The position numbers were made by a program, and so were the translations under genes. Source: Schizochytrium sp. TIO01 (lineage: Eukaryota; Protista; Bigyra: Labyrinthulomycetes). From it: 64,000 bases of DNA. The DNA is taken from NCBI GenBank assembly GCA_004764695.1, contig SMSO01000037.1, positions 3,386,747 to 3,450,746 on the forward strand, written 5' to 3'. The notes under the pieces are model-generated. The model saw only the letters and a list, made by a program, of their open reading frames with translations. It had not been told where the DNA came from and did no database searches. This document shows, one piece after another, positions 1 through 14,515 of the stretch; the first letter of the stretch is position 1; each line of letters opens with the position of its first letter.

Positions 1-1312
1 GGAACCAAAAAGCACACATCTCTTCAAGTTGTTCATCGCCGCCAGTTGTTGAATTTTTGCGACCCGATGAATCATACGTACAATGTACAGTTAGACGATC
101 ATCTGCATAGAGTGTAATATTTGAGGACAACCAATTGACTTGTTGAAGGTTATAGTCAAATTGAGCATCGCAAAACGCAAGGTATGGGCTTTCATAGCTG
201 TTGGCTGGACTCACAGTAGCCCAAATGCCAGTAGACATGCTACGTGCGAAGGCAAATGTAGCCAAGACTGTTACCCCCCGAGAAGGGAAGCTTGATGGCA
301 AACTTCTGCTAGCAGCAATCTCATAGAATGGCTCATCTGGAGGAATAAGTATCGAATCAGTAGACGCCCCAAATAATCCCCACGTAGCTGGCTGAAAGTT
401 GCTTGATGTTTGATTTTGAGGGATATAAGTTATCTCAAACCCGGAGCTGTCTGTATAGTTAGATTCCAATGCAGAGTTGAAATACTGCACCTCTAGAATG
501 TATACTTTATCTTGACCATTGATCATAATCCCAGATTCACTGGGCATACAAAGCGTTTCGCCCCCTGCGGCCCATGAATATACAAAATTAGTACAATTGA
601 GTGCGGACACGGTTCCTTGTGCAGGACTAGAAAACGCCAATTGCAGAGCTGTAGAGTTTTCACAGACCAACAAACGCATGGTTTCAACCATGTCAATTTG
701 ATCAATGACAGGGGAAATCCTTGTTATGTAAATTTTGTCTTCAGGTAGACCATCAAAAAGGTAACTAACTTGCGAGGTCTTTTCCTGCGTGATGGAATAG
801 CTGGGCATAGTCAAATTTACCTCTCGGGACCCAACTGACTTGCCGCATGAGGGTGATGGAGTAGGATAGAAAGTAGGGGAGAAAGTTGGAAAGTGCGTTG
901 GCTTCTGTGTAGGAGCATTGGTACTTTTAACAACGACATCATATACTCCTGGATTCGTGATGCCAGTTACATAAGTTGGAGTGTCTCCTTTCGACCAAAT
1001 ACAGCTGGGGTCTCCGAGTTCCTCGCCATTGGATAGTCCATCTCCATCGCTATCCTTTTTACAAAGTGCCTGAGTCCATGAGTGACCTGCACTTTGAAAG
1101 TCCCGACCAAAATTGTTGAGACTTCCTCCACCGCTTGCACGCGTATGACCTACGCCTGGATAGTAGACCCCACTAGAAGAGTAGACGTTGTGGCCATTTG
1201 GAATTCGATTCTGATAGCTACTATATCCGTAGCTCAAGCCAGGAAAAAGAGCAATGAAAAGCAACTGAGCAATCATGACCAAAATAGTACTTTCTGTTTT
1301 CATCTTTGACAT
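1..1312 (-). CDS. Secreted temptin-like + copper type II ascorbate-dependent monooxygenase-fold protein; 3'-partial (runs off the window); paralogue of 5379..7445
   Basis: Absent from the ORF track, presumably because no stop lies inside the window. Hand translation from ATG 1312: signal peptide MSKMKTESTILVMIAQLLFIALFPGLSYG; temptin-like YQNRIPNG...GVGH...GGGSLNNFGRDF...WTQALCKKDSDGDGLSNGEELGDPSCIW; P/T-rich linker; then VETMRLLVC, YSWAAGG, ILEVQYFN, DSSGFEITY, ATFAFAR, GGDEQLEEMCAFWF. Collinear with the 688-aa ORF. Confidence 0.9.
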   Translation of the reverse strand, partial: MSKMKTESTILVMIAQLLFIALFPGLSYGYSSYQNRIPNGHNVYSSSGVYYPGVGHTRASGGGSLNNFGRDFQSAGHSWTQALCKKDSDGDGLSNGEELGDPSCIWSKGDTPTYVTGITNPGVYDVVVKSTNAPTQKPTHFPTFSPTFYPTPSPSCGKSVGSREVNLTMPSYSITQEKTSQVSYLFDGLPEDKIYITRISPVIDQIDMVETMRLLVCENSTALQLAFSSPAQGTVSALNCTNFVYSWAAGGETLCMPSESGIMINGQDKVYILEVQYFNSALESNYTDSSGFEITYIPQNQTSSNFQPATWGLFGASTDSILIPPDEPFYEIAASRSLPSSFPSRGVTVLATFAFARSMSTGIWATVSPANSYESPYLAFCDAQFDYNLQQVNWLSSNITLYADDRLTVHCTYDSSGRKNSTTGGDEQLEEMCAFWF

Positions 1313-2998: not shown

Positions 2999-3562
2999 TC
3001 ATTGGTGATTGTGTAGGCCCTTGAAGGTCCTTCCAAGCAAGGTATCAACTTCTTCTTGCTTGAGATACTCTTGCCAGACCACTGGGTCTTCTGCCTTACA
3101 GTGGCATACTCTAAGCATGACAAAGAATATATGTTTGCACGGCCCTAATTCTATCTGATGTGCAGGGCATGTGCAAGATGGTTTGCGCGAAATGGTTACC
3201 TCATACTCGCATTTTGAAGACTCGCCTTGCTCTCCACCCTCGTTACCAGTTGTTTCTTTGAGTTTGAAGATGCCAGCTCCGCTTTGGTTGTATTCACCGC
3301 GAATCAAGCAAATCTCCGATTCGAGAGCAGAATACATGCGGTGTTGCGCATCTCTACTTAGTGTCGCAACGTAGGGGCCACCGCGACCCCGGGTTGGTGA
3401 TGCAGGAGTCAATGTCGATGCATTTGTAGGCGATGCAGTAGAGGAGCAAGTAGAGGAAGACGAAGCGGACGATGTAGATGCAACAGACTGTTTACGTTTA
3501 TTTTGGACCTCACGCGTAGCAACAATGCTTCCATGTCGTTTCCCTATGATAGGAAGGTGCAT
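2999..3562 (-). CDS. SWIM-type zinc finger protein
   Basis: 187-aa ORF containing YEVTISRKPSCTCP...PCKHIFFVMLRV (CxC-xn-CxH SWIM motif, similar to the N-terminal SWIM of ZSWIM2/MEKK1-type proteins) followed by VWQEYL; S/T-rich N-terminus. Confidence 0.8.
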   Translation of the reverse strand: MHLPIIGKRHGSIVATREVQNKRKQSVASTSSASSSSTCSSTASPTNASTLTPASPTRGRGGPYVATLSRDAQHRMYSALESEICLIRGEYNQSGAGIFKLKETTGNEGGEQGESSKCEYEVTISRKPSCTCPAHQIELGPCKHIFFVMLRVCHCKAEDPVVWQEYLKQEEVDTLLGRTFKGLHNHQ

Positions 3563-5378: not shown

Positions 5379-7445
5379 TTAGGCTTGTGCGATGACTCTT
5401 GTAGGCGAGCGTGGCCTCTCCACCTCCTGCTCTTCGACATCAAGGAGCGCAGACTTTTGATTCTTTTCGGGGTTTTCTGATTTCGAAATCAAACGGCGAC
5501 GGACAATCATAACAGCAGTGAAGACTAGCAACATTACAATCAGGACAATGCTTGCAATACTCAAAGCACGCGCGGAATCACTCTCCATATAGTAGAGCTC
5601 ATACTGACTTATGCCAAGAAGAACATTCGTGAGTCCGAGAATAATGAGAGCACGACCAAGAAGGTGGTGCGCCCACTCCCATTTTGTGCGCCAGCTTGCT
5701 TCTTTATCGGGCCGCACTATAGCAAGGACCAGATGTGCAAAAACGATGATGATGATCGCAAGTCCAAGCTTACCGTGGGTGGACTGAAAGTTGTTGCCCT
5801 TTTTGTAAACTACAATAACGATGAAGGCAACCAGAGTAAGAAGCATTGCCAAAGCAACGAGAATTTCATGGCCAAGGAACCAAATGCGACTGCCTTTGAT
5901 TTTGAAAAGCAGCGGCAAAAGTGTAGCGCCAGGGACAAGAATGATCCATGCAACAAACATCATCATAGCATGAAGTCCTAATTGCCAAGGTGCTCCGGAA
6001 ATCCAATCGCTAAAACTCGTTCCAGCATCTGCCGTCGAAGATGATGATTCACTCTCACAGCTAATGCTGGAGTCGTATTCCAAACTGAGAGAGGATGAGC
6101 TCGAGCTAACATCGGATGATAAGGCTTCAAGACTGATGGTCTCTTGTGGGTAGTAAAGAAACATGCCAACACACATTTCGTCACTGGAAGATTCACCGCC
6201 ATTTGTTGTGCTAGTAACTTCCGAAGTGTCATATACACAATGTACTGTAACCCGATCTCCAGATGTTAGATTGATTGAGGTATCCAAAGATGACACATCC
6301 TGAAGATCAAAGTCATAGTTAGCATAGCAGGATGCCAGATATGCCTCTGAGGCGTCGTCTGATGGAGTGACAGTCATCCAGACTTTGGTGGCGAGAGTAC
6401 GAGCGTATGCCATTGTAGCAAATACGGTAATTCCATCGTCGGGTAGACCAGAAGGGAGAACTTTTGATGCTGATATCTCGTAGAATGAAGTCTGGGCAGG
6501 AATAGAAATAGATGTAGGTTCAGCACCAACCCAACCCCAAGCTGCAGTTTGAAAGTCATTTGATACTACATCTTCTGTTAAGTATGTTACTTGGAACCCA
6601 GAACTGTCGGAAAGACCTGATGTGCTAGCTGTATTGTCGTAGTGTACTTCAAGAACTAGCACACGACCTGCCGAGGCATTGAAGGCAAGACCAACATCTG
6701 CAGGCATACAGAAGTCTTCGCCTCCAGTTGCCCAGGTAAAAATGAGATTCGTGCAACCACCCATAGAGTCTGATGGTCCTGTTGTGGCAAGAGCTGATCT
6801 AAGCTCTGTTGTGTCCTCGCAGTCGTACAACCGCATTGTCTCAACCAGCTCAGTCTGGTCTGTAATGGCAGAGACTTGGGTAATATAGTTCATACCCTCA
6901 GGTGCTTCATCGTAAAGATACATGGCATATGTACTCTCGTCTGATGGGATTGAATAGCTTGGCATCGTGATGTTAAACTCAGAAGCCCCACTCGGTACTT
7001 CATAGTCCTCACAAGTGGAAGAGCTGCTGGTATCAGTTGATACAGTATTTGCAACGCCAGGATGTGTAATTCCTTCTGTCCTGGTAGGAGTGTCACCCTG
7101 TGTCCATACGCAATCTGGGTCTCCAAGCTCTTCTCCATTAGTCATTCCATCACCATCGCTGTCCATCTGACAAAGTGCTGTGGTCCACGATTCTCCTGCG
7201 CTTCGGAAATCCTCGCCAAAACTGTTTAGACTCCCTCCTCCGCCTGCGCTATTGTGGCCAACACCTGGCCAGGCAGTGTTGTCCTCTGAGAAGACATTGT
7301 CTCCATTCGGAATAAGCTCTTGAAATGAGCTATGGCCAGAACTCAGAGCAGGTAGTGATGCAACTACAATCAGACAAGCAACCACCAGAGGCTTTCCAAG
7401 CCTGATAGTTGGTCCCCGGGCGGGGTTTGCGATTTCCTGTCGCAT
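5379..7445 (-). CDS. Temptin-like + copper type II monooxygenase (DBH/PHM/MOXD1)-fold + cytochrome b561 multidomain membrane protein
   Basis: 688-aa ORF. Hydrophobic N-terminal signal; temptin-like IPNG...WPGVGH...LNSFGEDF...WTTALCQMDSDGDGMTNGEELGDPDCVW; monooxygenase motifs FTWATGG, LEVHYDN, DSSGF, YDFDLQ, GDRVTVHCVYDT, DEMC; C-terminal about 5 TM b561 domain with LHAMMM, WFLGHE, STHGKLG, WAHHLLGR. The 5' end is uncertain (see findings). Confidence 0.9.
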   Translation of the reverse strand: MRQEIANPARGPTIRLGKPLVVACLIVVASLPALSSGHSSFQELIPNGDNVFSEDNTAWPGVGHNSAGGGGSLNSFGEDFRSAGESWTTALCQMDSDGDGMTNGEELGDPDCVWTQGDTPTRTEGITHPGVANTVSTDTSSSSTCEDYEVPSGASEFNITMPSYSIPSDESTYAMYLYDEAPEGMNYITQVSAITDQTELVETMRLYDCEDTTELRSALATTGPSDSMGGCTNLIFTWATGGEDFCMPADVGLAFNASAGRVLVLEVHYDNTASTSGLSDSSGFQVTYLTEDVVSNDFQTAAWGWVGAEPTSISIPAQTSFYEISASKVLPSGLPDDGITVFATMAYARTLATKVWMTVTPSDDASEAYLASCYANYDFDLQDVSSLDTSINLTSGDRVTVHCVYDTSEVTSTTNGGESSSDEMCVGMFLYYPQETISLEALSSDVSSSSSSLSLEYDSSISCESESSSSTADAGTSFSDWISGAPWQLGLHAMMMFVAWIILVPGATLLPLLFKIKGSRIWFLGHEILVALAMLLTLVAFIVIVVYKKGNNFQSTHGKLGLAIIIIVFAHLVLAIVRPDKEASWRTKWEWAHHLLGRALIILGLTNVLLGISQYELYYMESDSARALSIASIVLIVMLLVFTAVMIVRRRLISKSENPEKNQKSALLDVEEQEVERPRSPTRVIAQA

Positions 7446-12715: not shown

Positions 12716-14515
12716 CTAGGTCTTGGCAGCGTGCTTCGTAGCTGCCTCGAGAGCCTCACAGATTGCACGGTTGACCGAAGCATGTCTAGTTGGATTTGAC
12801 AGGTTCATCACAATCTTTCTGCCGCAGCCCTCGTGAGATGGAAGCACAAGTGCAAGGCCAGGAATCATTGCATGCCCATGCCCCGACGGTTCCTGCACAG
12901 AGATAACTCGATCTGCGCCAAACTTGGCAGAAAACCAGGAACTCACGCCAAGTTTGAGCTCGGTATCAGCACAGGGCCCAATGTTTGCTGACTTGGGACT
13001 CGTTTCAGAGTCCCCCACAGGCTTGACATCAGCGTTCGCTGAATCGGTTTTGAGGTCCTCCTTGCAAATGCCATGCTCTGTGGTATCCACCTTGGCCTCG
13101 AGGGGGCAATTTACAGAGCTTGCGGATTGCTCTCCTAAAATAGTCGTGTTTCTCTTCGCCATTTGAGAAGAAGTGCTCGGGATGCGTGTTTCAAGACACC
13201 ACGAATTGAACAGAACACCCCCATTCATGAAGGCGTCGGAAAAGGGTCTGCTCATTGCAGCCTCCCGAGCGCGCTGATGATGCCGCAATGATGCATGGAG
13301 ACGGTACTCGGCGTCAAGATCTGAGCTGTTGAGACTTCGCCGCACCTCTTTGTGAGTAAGATAAACAGATTCGCCAAGCCATTCCGCAACAGTTCTTTTA
13401 CTCCGTGGCTTCAATGTAACCTCACCTAAAATACGCACAATTGGATTGCCAGCGGTAAATTCAGATGGAAAGAACTCAGAACGAGCACGGATACTCACCA
13501 CTTGAGCGAAAGGAACTGCAATGCCTTCTTCCTTACGATGGGTGTCGTTATCAGTACCGCCATTGTTGCAGCTATTATTGACTGCTGCACAAGCGCTCTT
13601 CGCATTCACGTCAGCCAGGCCTTGTAAGACTAGAGCCATAATAATTTCATGAGTTGATGCCCATGAACCTGACTTTTTGAGACATTCAGAATGTACAAAA
13701 TCCTTTAGAATCGAGACTTGTGCAGGATCTAAATCAATTGTCTGCTCCACGTCCTTTAGAGCTGTCTGTGATTCTGTGCAAGCTTGACCTAAGGCAGCGT
13801 CGAATACATCATTTGCACTAGTGTCGTTTGGGTGTGTGCTAAAATTCATGAGCTTGCATAAACGAAGTTCTTCTGAAGAGTTTAGAGCTGGCGCAGGAGG
13901 CACCTTTGTAGATTTATGCAGAGGCCAATTTTGTTGGAAAATATCGAGCTCTGTATCTGAAGCGGATTGTGTACATGCAGACCATAAATTGACAAAGTGG
14001 CACATTGTTGTTGCGTCAAAAAGATAATGGCACCCAGCTAAAACAAAGCGAGCTCGCCATCTGCGATCGCGATCGCTACTTCCCGTGTCTTCTTTGTTCG
14101 GGAAGACCTGCACTGCAGCTATCAACATCCGAGAACCAAAAACCTTGCCATCTTTTGACCCAGGAATGGGCAGAGAAGGAGCAGTTAACTCTTGATCAAG
14201 GTCATAGATTCGTAACTCAGCGGCGCAGTCTGTACGTAAAGCCTCAAGTCTCCATGTACGCTCATCCTCTTCATTGGAGGCCAGAACACGTGCCCCAGCA
14301 AGCGGGAAGCAGCTTAGTGCACGAGCAAGGCCTTTACGTATGGTATCAGCTCCCTGTTTACCACGAAGGTGGTCAGCTTTTTCAAGATTGATTTCTACGC
14401 AGTTTGGAAACCGTGCGGTGATGATATCTGCACCATCAAGTTCAGAGACGATCTTCTCTTCGCATGGCGGAGGGTCTGCATGGACTAGACCGTGCCAGAG
14501 CTTCGCCGTTTCCAT
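12716..14515 (-). CDS. HXXXD-type (BAHD/transferase-like) CoA-dependent acyltransferase
   Basis: 599-aa intronless ORF: LARALSCFPLAGARV (typical N-terminal segment), catalytic CHYLFDATTMCHFVNLWS (HxxxD), STHEIIMALV, VSIRAR...GN, and FNSW...AKFG as a degenerate DFGWG region. Confidence 0.7.
   Translation of the reverse strand: METAKLWHGLVHADPPPCEEKIVSELDGADIITARFPNCVEINLEKADHLRGKQGADTIRKGLARALSCFPLAGARVLASNEEDERTWRLEALRTDCAAELRIYDLDQELTAPSLPIPGSKDGKVFGSRMLIAAVQVFPNKEDTGSSDRDRRWRARFVLAGCHYLFDATTMCHFVNLWSACTQSASDTELDIFQQNWPLHKSTKVPPAPALNSSEELRLCKLMNFSTHPNDTSANDVFDAALGQACTESQTALKDVEQTIDLDPAQVSILKDFVHSECLKKSGSWASTHEIIMALVLQGLADVNAKSACAAVNNSCNNGGTDNDTHRKEEGIAVPFAQVVSIRARSEFFPSEFTAGNPIVRILGEVTLKPRSKRTVAEWLGESVYLTHKEVRRSLNSSDLDAEYRLHASLRHHQRAREAAMSRPFSDAFMNGGVLFNSWCLETRIPSTSSQMAKRNTTILGEQSASSVNCPLEAKVDTTEHGICKEDLKTDSANADVKPVGDSETSPKSANIGPCADTELKLGVSSWFSAKFGADRVISVQEPSGHGHAMIPGLALVLPSHEGCGRKIVMNLSNPTRHASVNRAICEALEAATKHAAKT

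Follow-up and report, generated by a model that had tools for sequence, protein, structure and literature searches.

A thraustochytrid fusion of Temptin, a copper-less DBH-like core and cytochrome b561

What is left for a monooxygenase to do when the copper ligands of its core have been lost and the cytochrome b561 fused to it keeps its heme ligands? The question is raised by a gene at positions 5379-7445, minus strand, of a 64,000-nucleotide stretch of the genome of Schizochytrium sp. TIO01 (C36:3386747-3450746 of a 64-Mb assembly in 37 contigs), referred to here as the window. The gene product joins a Temptin_C module, both halves of the monooxygenase fold of PHM and DBH, and a cytochrome b561 membrane domain in one polypeptide. 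In animals, cytochrome b561 works together with PHM/DBH from a distance, with ascorbate as the shuttle. An earlier note, made from the DNA letters, had proposed that this protein ties an enzyme to its electron donor with the oxygenase site disabled, and that it acts either as a ligand- or pheromone-sensing surface protein or as a transmembrane electron conduit with a repurposed ectodomain.

The gene is a single uninterrupted open reading frame (ORF) of 688 codons from ATG to stop, with coordinates checked codon by codon. Its features, and the evidence for each, are as follows.

Window 5379..7445, minus strand: whole gene, an intronless ORF of 688 amino acids (aa) with its stop codon at 5379-5381; ORF list and the 99%-identical complete transcript ORF P0247.
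Window 7335..7445, minus strand: predicted signal peptide, residues 1-37, with a basic n-region, a hydrophobic core and SSG before H38; read from the sequence, and modelled as a helix at 18-42 with a low predicted local distance difference test score (pLDDT).
Window 7053..7340, minus strand: Temptin_C module, residues 36-131, with near-invariant H64 (7254-7256) and H128 (7062-7064); Pfam.
Window 7116..7163, minus strand: DSDGDGMTNGEELGDP, residues 95-110, a family-invariant EF-hand/TSP3-like pattern of a putative calcium-binding loop; invariant columns and a weak TSP3_bac match.
Window 6624..6977, minus strand: Cu2_monooxygen, the N-terminal half of the PHM/DBH fold, residues 157-274, with the CuH copper site dismantled; Pfam, alignment to 4zel and Foldseek.
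Window 6837-6842, 6642-6644 and 6831-6833, minus strand: CuH-site positions, respectively E202/T203 (in place of HH), H268 (kept) and R205.
Window 6123..6470, minus strand: Cu2_monoox_C, the C-terminal half of the PHM/DBH fold, residues 326-441, with the CuM copper site dismantled; Pfam, alignment to 4zel and Foldseek.
Window 6399-6407 and 6174-6176, minus strand: CuM-site positions, respectively Y347-A-R349 (in place of HxH) and M424 (kept).
Window 5988..6122, minus strand: Ser-rich linker, residues 442-486, with the family-invariant C463; low pLDDT at 466-474 and the invariant column.
Window 5478..5987, minus strand: five-helix cytochrome b561 bundle, residues 487-656; Pfam, model helices and profile matches to 4o6y and 5zle.
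Window 5970-5972 and 5775-5777, minus strand: heme His at the outer ends, H492 (helix A) and H557 (helix C).
Window 5868-5870 and 5667-5669, minus strand: heme His at the cytosolic ends, H526 (helix B) and H593 (helix D).
Window 5382..5477, minus strand: cytosolic tail, residues 657-688, with no recognisable domain; Pfam, model and sequence.

All four Pfam matches scored above their cut-offs: Temptin_C (PF24784) at residues 36-131 with an expect value (E) of 1.5e-36 and 125.3 bits against a cut-off of 27, Cu2_monooxygen (PF01082) at 157-274 (E 6e-18, 65.7 bits against 30), Cu2_monoox_C (PF03712) at 326-441 (E 3e-17, 62.9 bits against 23), and Cytochrom_B561 (PF03188) at 491-614 (E 4e-9, 37.3 bits against 23). 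The Pfam scan, run to an E of 1, gave no DOMON family match. The ten extracellular Cys are all retained, and the full-length AlphaFold model, built on a 40-sequence alignment, had a mean pLDDT of 84.8 with most of the core above 90. The predicted signal peptide, together with basic loops on the predicted cytosolic side, points to an N-out membrane protein.

The best solved relative of the protein is human dopamine beta-hydroxylase (4zel, E 7e-27), and the alignment with it locates the losses. The HH pair of DBH falls on E202/T203 and its HxH motif on Y347/R349; the His of 'VHY' and the Met of 'EMC' fall on H268 and M424, which are kept. In the numbering of PHM, the three CuH ligands H107, H108 and H172 thus correspond to E202, T203 and H268, with the third alone retained, and the CuM ligands H242, H244 and M314 to Y347, R349 and M424, with the Met alone retained. 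Four of the five copper His are therefore replaced (HH to ET, HxH to YxR), a ligand state written below as ETH/YRM, in the column order H,H,H for CuH and H,H,M for CuM. Foldseek searches with the model likewise placed DBH 4zel on top (E 9e-24; root-mean-square deviation 2.8 over 306 columns), with about 30 PHM entries near the top at E of about 1e-15. The 4zel match stops at about residue 464 of DBH, and the C-terminal dimerisation domain of that enzyme has no counterpart. The substitutions are no assembly artefact, because P0247, a poly-A transcript of a sister strain in the MMETSP collection with a complete 688-aa ORF identical at 682/688 positions, carries the same VETM and YAR replacements. 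A search of sequencing runs listed 23 holders in 11 studies, none of them recorded as RNA. The fold places the protein in the PHM/DBH superfamily; it has neither of the two defining catalytic ligand sets and is not classed as a copper monooxygenase, and its reading as a pseudo-monooxygenase is solid.

The membrane domain presents the opposite picture. Its model helices span residues 487-517, 521-548, 556-576, 586-618 and 623-656, and the four heme His in the motifs LHAM, GHE, THG and AHH (H492, H526, H557 and H593) lie at alternating ends of four consecutive helices, with H492/H557 forming the outer pair and H526/H593 the cytosolic pair. A phmmer search of the PDB with the C-terminus of the protein alone gave nothing meaningful, and family profiles were needed: profile A1 matched 4o6y at E 5e-8 and 5zle at E 0.014, and profile A2, which has no monooxygenase columns, matched 4o6y at E 4e-7 and 5zle at E 1.4e-4. 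The four heme-His columns of the family profile align with the four heme-ligating His of both structures. Together, the domain matches, the ligand losses and the b561 His alignment are far beyond chance. The anatomy described in the earlier note was thus borne out: the four-domain fusion by the Pfam matches, the loss of four copper His with the DEMC Met kept by the 4zel alignment and the 99%-identical transcript, the temptin-like calcium-loop motif by its presence at residues 95-110, and the intact heme His by their alignment with those of 4o6y and 5zle. The C-terminus, on which the claim of a fusion hinged, matched b561 through both Pfam and the family profiles, and the structural comparison with PHM/DBH that the note had suggested returned 4zel and PHM.

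The genome holds six Cu2_monooxygen loci. Four of them form a 16-kb head-to-tail array on the minus strand, a fifth (parC) lies outside the array, and the sixth is an unrelated gene with PHM and NHL parts on C32. The five related genes and their ligand columns are as follows.

C36 ~3377.6-3379.6 kb, minus strand: parA, with intact ligands, HHH/HH(M) in the assembly and HHH/HHM in the database protein P0002.
C36 3380.6-3382.6 kb, minus strand: parD, QSD/NNL.
C36 3385.9-3388.1 kb, minus strand: parB, ETQ/FRM, 714 aa, with its N-terminal part at window 1..1312 (minus strand) and the gene running past the window start.
C36 3392.1-3394.2 kb, minus strand: the gene under study, ETH/YRM.
Outside the array, 151 kb away: parC, LSD/NNR.

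All four heme His are present in each of the five paralogues, and the gene under study is the least degenerate of the four that are Cu-less. The database proteins P0002, P0003, P0004 and P0005 are 99% identical to parA, parD, parC and parB, respectively. A complete form of parA is found both as P0002 (664 aa, from a transcript) and as P0251 (674 aa, from a 27-kb genomic contig), each with the order Temptin, core, b561 and the state HHH/HHM. In the assembly, a single G is missing directly ahead of the DEMC motif at C36:3378310-3378399 (minus strand), which breaks the parA ORF and puts the b561 part in the next frame; P0002 and P0251 read through this site (T-S-D-E-M-C). The break reflects an error of the assembly or else a pseudogene specific to the strain.

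Two trees were used to place these genes, a quick IQ-TREE run on 48 rows with the Shimodaira-Hasegawa-like approximate likelihood ratio test (SH-aLRT), and an independent one on 19 rows and 613 columns (LG+F+G4, 1000 replicates each of SH-aLRT and the ultrafast bootstrap). The five thraustochytrid genes formed one clade (100/100), nested in both trees among intact b561-fused protist enzymes. Within it, the Cu-less four were monophyletic (98 in the first tree; 99.2/99 in the second) with parA as sister, and split into the gene under study with parB (98; 97.9/95) and parC with parD (100/100). The gene under study has the shortest branch (0.22-0.26) and the most ligands kept, and shares the states E-T and [YF]-x-R with parB. 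The lineage of this gene goes back to the duplication of an intact Temptin-DBH-like monooxygenase fused to b561, represented by the still adjoining parA. The HH and HxH pairs were lost once in the Cu-less lineage, and H268 and M424 were then eroded copy by copy. Such stepwise and uncoordinated loss of leftover ligands is expected if the copper sites were abandoned, and not rebuilt.

Sequence conservation was compared between the intact enzymes and the four Cu-less copies, and no new His, Cys or Met common to the latter and absent from the former was found in the ectodomain. The earlier note had named replacement His residues as the sign of rebuilt copper sites, and none appeared in this comparison. 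Arg is instead seen at or near the former ligand positions: R205 directly follows the lost His pair in all four Cu-less copies, R349 is present in this protein and parB, and parC has Arg at the Met position. These residues may fill the vacated metal sites. Several conserved positions other than ligands have also been lost in the Cu-less cores (T171, Y173, K175, M228, F379, D380, E383 and R410); Y173 presumably corresponds to PHM Tyr79 near CuH, which we take as a lead only.

To place the loss within the family, a homologue set of about 250 proteins was assembled from two database searches, in the exhaustive one of which the best 150 of 6,150 representatives were examined. The state HHH/HHM was found in 177 of them (about 70%). 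All b561-fused proteins of other species belong to this group, among them P0006 of Durusdinium, P0009 of the diatom Entomoneis and numerous environmental proteins without a name. Temptin-core proteins that lack b561 are common in molluscs, where they go under the names DBH-like, tyramine beta-hydroxylase-like or Temptin, and sporadic ligand loss occurs in Temptin-DBH-like proteins without b561, mostly from molluscs (P0068 of Lymnaea, named Temptin; P0116/P0201, P0159, P0171, P0188, P0219 and P0235). Since these losses are independent, pseudo-monooxygenases arose several times in the family. The mollusc cases are never joined to b561, and in these searches the combination of a Cu-less core with b561 was seen in the thraustochytrid lineage only; the Cu-less clade is so far known from that one lineage.

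Loss of the ligands has not been followed by loss of constraint. Between parC and parD, which lack all six ligands and are 74% identical, the Nei-Gojobori ratio of nonsynonymous to synonymous substitutions (dN/dS) was 0.108 overall, with 0.105 for the dead core and 0.10 for b561 plus tail; as dS was 1.1-2.0, these ratios are approximate, and purifying selection on the pair is clear. Positions at least 85% conserved in 21 intact b561-fused enzymes were then counted in each paralogue. The Cu-less copies keep 38-41 of the 41 Temptin positions (40/41 in parA; 41/41 in the protein under study) and 13 of the 16 b561 positions (13/16 in parA), whereas in the N-terminal half of the core they keep 19-22 of 30 (parA 28/30) and in the C-terminal half 14-21 of 27 (parA 27/27). 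In these counts, decay is confined to the monooxygenase core, and Temptin and b561 match parA in conservation. The dead core nevertheless retains its fold and disulfide cysteines, and is under strong purifying selection.

The Temptin module has the features of Temptin_C members, an invariant Cys pair and the loop DSDGDG..NG.ELGDP. Its invariant columns are D95, S96, D97, D99, G100, N103, G104, E106, L107, G108, D109 and P110, forming an invariant EF-hand/TSP3-like pattern D-x-D-x-D-G-x-x-N-x-x-E that would be expected to bind calcium. H64 and H128 are near-invariant, H128 being replaced by N in parB, parC and parD. Modelled alone (window 7041-7340), the module had a pLDDT of 92 and a predicted template modelling score of 0.84. 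The model found no match in the PDB with Foldseek, and no chain with Z of at least 2 among 48,161 PDB representatives with VIA-align; the fold is predicted with confidence, has no relative of known structure, and as modelled gives no clue to function. A search of a protein atlas with Temptin returned Temptin_C clusters only. A predicted complex of Temptin (36-135) with the b561 bundle (478-668) and two hemes scored 0.02, which speaks neither for nor against docking. An N-terminal histidine brace at H38, the would-be first mature residue, was considered and rejected: the paralogues have Y, E, K or R there, and Temptin relatives vary. In the genome, Temptin_C occurs at six places, the five paralogues and, as the sole match outside them, a 940-aa open frame on C13 (C13:3586610-3589822; match at C13:3588110-3588322, plus strand).

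Six proteins from other protists (P0117, P0120, P0132, P0173, P0241 and P0244) are complete without a monooxygenase core, running from signal peptide through Temptin and a linker to a five-helix b561. Their Temptin_C module is the same as that of the protein under study (50-65% identity) and their b561 of the same five-helix kind; the difference lies in the absence of a PHM/DBH core between the modules. Temptin-core thus parallels DOMON-core of DBH, and Temptin-b561 parallels the DOMON-b561 arrangement of CYBDOM. By this analogy, Temptin and b561 may form a functional unit in their own right, toward whose function the Cu-less paralogues would have drifted.

Compared with DBH, PHM and MOXD1/2, the protein under study has both beta-sandwich halves, the disulfide Cys, the 'VHY' His and the 'EMC' Met, but lacks four of the five copper His and the DBH dimerisation domain, carries b561 at its C-terminus, and has Temptin where DBH has DOMON. 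Intact fusions of stramenopile-alveolate-rhizarian (SAR) protists, namely parA/P0002, P0006 of Durusdinium trenchii (named 'DBH-like monooxygenase protein 2 homolog') and P0009 of Entomoneis, have the same four-domain order at 36-51% identity, with the same heme His and Temptin motifs; they keep all six copper ligands, unlike the clade of this protein, of which they are the direct evolutionary source. CYBDOM proteins (Arabidopsis HYP1/CRR, animal SDR2/FRRS1), documented as ferric reductases (PMC10784544, PMC10784552), offer an analogy in that their b561 bundle likewise bears an extracytosolic N-terminal domain and conducts electrons outward, and the protein may work in a like manner. It belongs to the b561 and Temptin_C families and not to CYBDOM, as DOMON is absent, as is the third heme site, and the ectodomain consists of Temptin and a dead monooxygenase core. 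DCYTB and other stand-alone b561 ferric reductases, which have a known iron-reduction role in marine protists (PMC11934334), share the four-His two-heme core, as the profile matches to 5zle and 4o6y indicate, but have six helices and no ectodomain, whereas the protein has five (equivalent to transmembrane helices 2-6) after a 450-residue ectodomain. The mollusc protein temptin differs in being small, secreted and without a membrane part. Literature searches found no paper on the intact Temptin-DBH-like-b561 fusion, its Cu-less form or Cu-less DBH-like pseudoenzymes, the only related mention being a copper-induced 'DBH-like' gene in a diatom (PMC9724779).

The thraustochytrid clade also differs from the stand-alone b561 reductases in two extra His of the bundle, H571 (window 5733-5735, minus strand) and H594 (5664-5666, minus strand), near the predicted cytosolic heme. 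Both are found in all five paralogues, including the intact parA. Elsewhere in the family, position 571 is Gln in 95% of members and position 594 varies.

What such a protein does can be weighed against this background. The earlier note had treated it as a one-off, but three other Cu-less paralogues share its origin from an intact tandem neighbour. The joining of an enzyme to its electron donor holds for the ancestor, for the intact parA and for the protist relatives (HHH/HHM with b561). Of the two functions that had been offered, the repurposed transmembrane electron conduit fits the conservation pattern. The PHM/DBH-type ectodomain is probably unable to bind the two catalytic coppers, and the b561 bundle probably remains a two-heme transmembrane electron conduit. 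The inner heme (H526/H593) would be reduced by cytosolic ascorbate and would pass the electron on to the outer one (H492/H557). In the absence of the CuH acceptor, the electron would then exit to an external acceptor, with chelates of Fe(III) or Cu(II), monodehydroascorbate and a partner protein as candidates, and the dead core and Temptin would serve as scaffold or binding platform. Such an exit would resemble that of DCYTB, the CYBDOM reductases and the core-less Temptin-b561 proteins; stand-alone b561 proteins act as ferric reductases, and so do CYBDOMs (PMC11934334, PMC10784544, PMC10784552).

A number of points weigh against this assignment. Heme binding, ascorbate reducibility and reductase activity are predicted from conserved residues only, and the external electron acceptors are candidates only. 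The absence of substitute ligands was judged from sequence conservation and not from geometry. This copy alone keeps H268 and M424, which could reflect a residual metal role and not just the slowest loss. At an omega of 0.1, the dead core is constrained strongly enough to imply a specific role for it that the proposed conduit leaves vague. The evidence on conservation comes from paralogues and strains of one lineage, and no Cu-less b561-fused orthologue was found in other species, either among the best 150 of the 6,150 representatives or in a second, word-indexed search seeded with parC, whose sensitivity was limited (its candidates did not include even a known relative like P0006).

One rival function is that of a regulatory or auxiliary subunit, in which Cu-less copies would assemble with parA or with secreted copper enzymes and either feed them electrons through their own b561 or present substrate. 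Purifying selection on the dead core fits a conserved protein-protein interface, many pseudoenzymes pair with active paralogues, the gene is linked in tandem to the intact parA within 16 kb on one strand, and human DBH is oligomeric (structure 4zel). PHM is monomeric, however, the DBH dimerisation domain has no counterpart (beyond about residue 464 of DBH, the protein consists of linker and b561), and parA has its own b561 and needs no donor subunit, which leaves this role improbable, if worth keeping in view. A surface receptor or sensor, the function offered in the earlier note, is unlikely; in it, a copper-less pocket would bind a small ligand or pheromone and signal across the membrane, perhaps by gating electron flow through b561. 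The ectodomain fold is indeed conserved without catalysis, and the pocket-lining T171, Y173 and K175 differ among paralogues, as if specificities differed; but there is no signalling domain, the cytosolic tail has about 32 residues, the link of temptin to pheromones goes back to a name from Aplysia and is no sign of a pheromone role here, and the Temptin_C matches of the genome all fall within the five paralogues or one further large ORF.

Retention of H268 and M424, with a carboxylate at 202, might also be read as an oxygenase or other metalloenzyme whose metal site has been rebuilt or is mononuclear, made up for instance of E202/H268, or of M424 and new ligands. Such an enzyme is very improbable: H268 and M424 come from different sites (CuH and CuM), the sister copies vary at these leftover ligands (Q/D at 268; R/L at 424), the ectodomain has gained no new conserved His, Cys or Met, and Arg stands at or next to former ligand positions. 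That the gene is a decaying pseudogene or an annotation artefact is scarcely credible, even with its catalytic residues lost and the neighbouring parA ORF broken in the assembly, as its 688-codon ORF is intact, the complete sister-strain transcript differs by 6 amino acids, dN/dS is about 0.1 in the fully ligand-less pair, and Temptin, b561 and the disulfide cysteines are fully conserved. The electron conduit set out above remains the preferred function, and one extension of it is possible though doubtful. Temptin may be a new extracytosolic partner of b561, taking the part of DOMON, and the Cu-less copies would then be Temptin-dependent transmembrane reductases or metal-handling proteins, with the dead monooxygenase merely a scaffold and H64 (with H128) and the calcium loop as the acceptor or substrate site.

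Three further ORFs were noted. At C32:437774-441043 (minus strand), the sixth Cu2_monooxygen locus is a 775-aa ORF with a PHM-like core (HHH/HHM intact) and NHL/beta-propeller repeats, a predicted bifunctional PAM-like (PHM+PAL) architecture in a thraustochytrid. At window 2999-3562 (minus strand), between parB and the gene under study, lies a 187-aa ORF carrying a SWIM zinc finger (E 1.9e-5), which looks unrelated to the family. At window 12716-14515 (minus strand), a 599-aa ORF had no Pfam match at E up to 0.001.

The presence of b561 and PHM/DBH in one polypeptide, here and in many SAR protists, would provide a natural construct for direct heme-to-copper electron delivery. The thraustochytrid gene set forms a graded natural series on one b561 chassis, with six ligands, then two, one and none, and this series shows what stays selectable after catalysis is lost, namely Temptin, b561 and a folded core. 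Temptin is also flagged as a module that recurs next to redox enzymes; if its proposed partnership with b561 is true, this domain, which is without a solved relative, would define a new redox-associated domain class. A second function of these proteins, independent of copper, might come to light from the series, for example surface metal reduction in a marine osmotroph that also serves as an industrial producer of docosahexaenoic acid.

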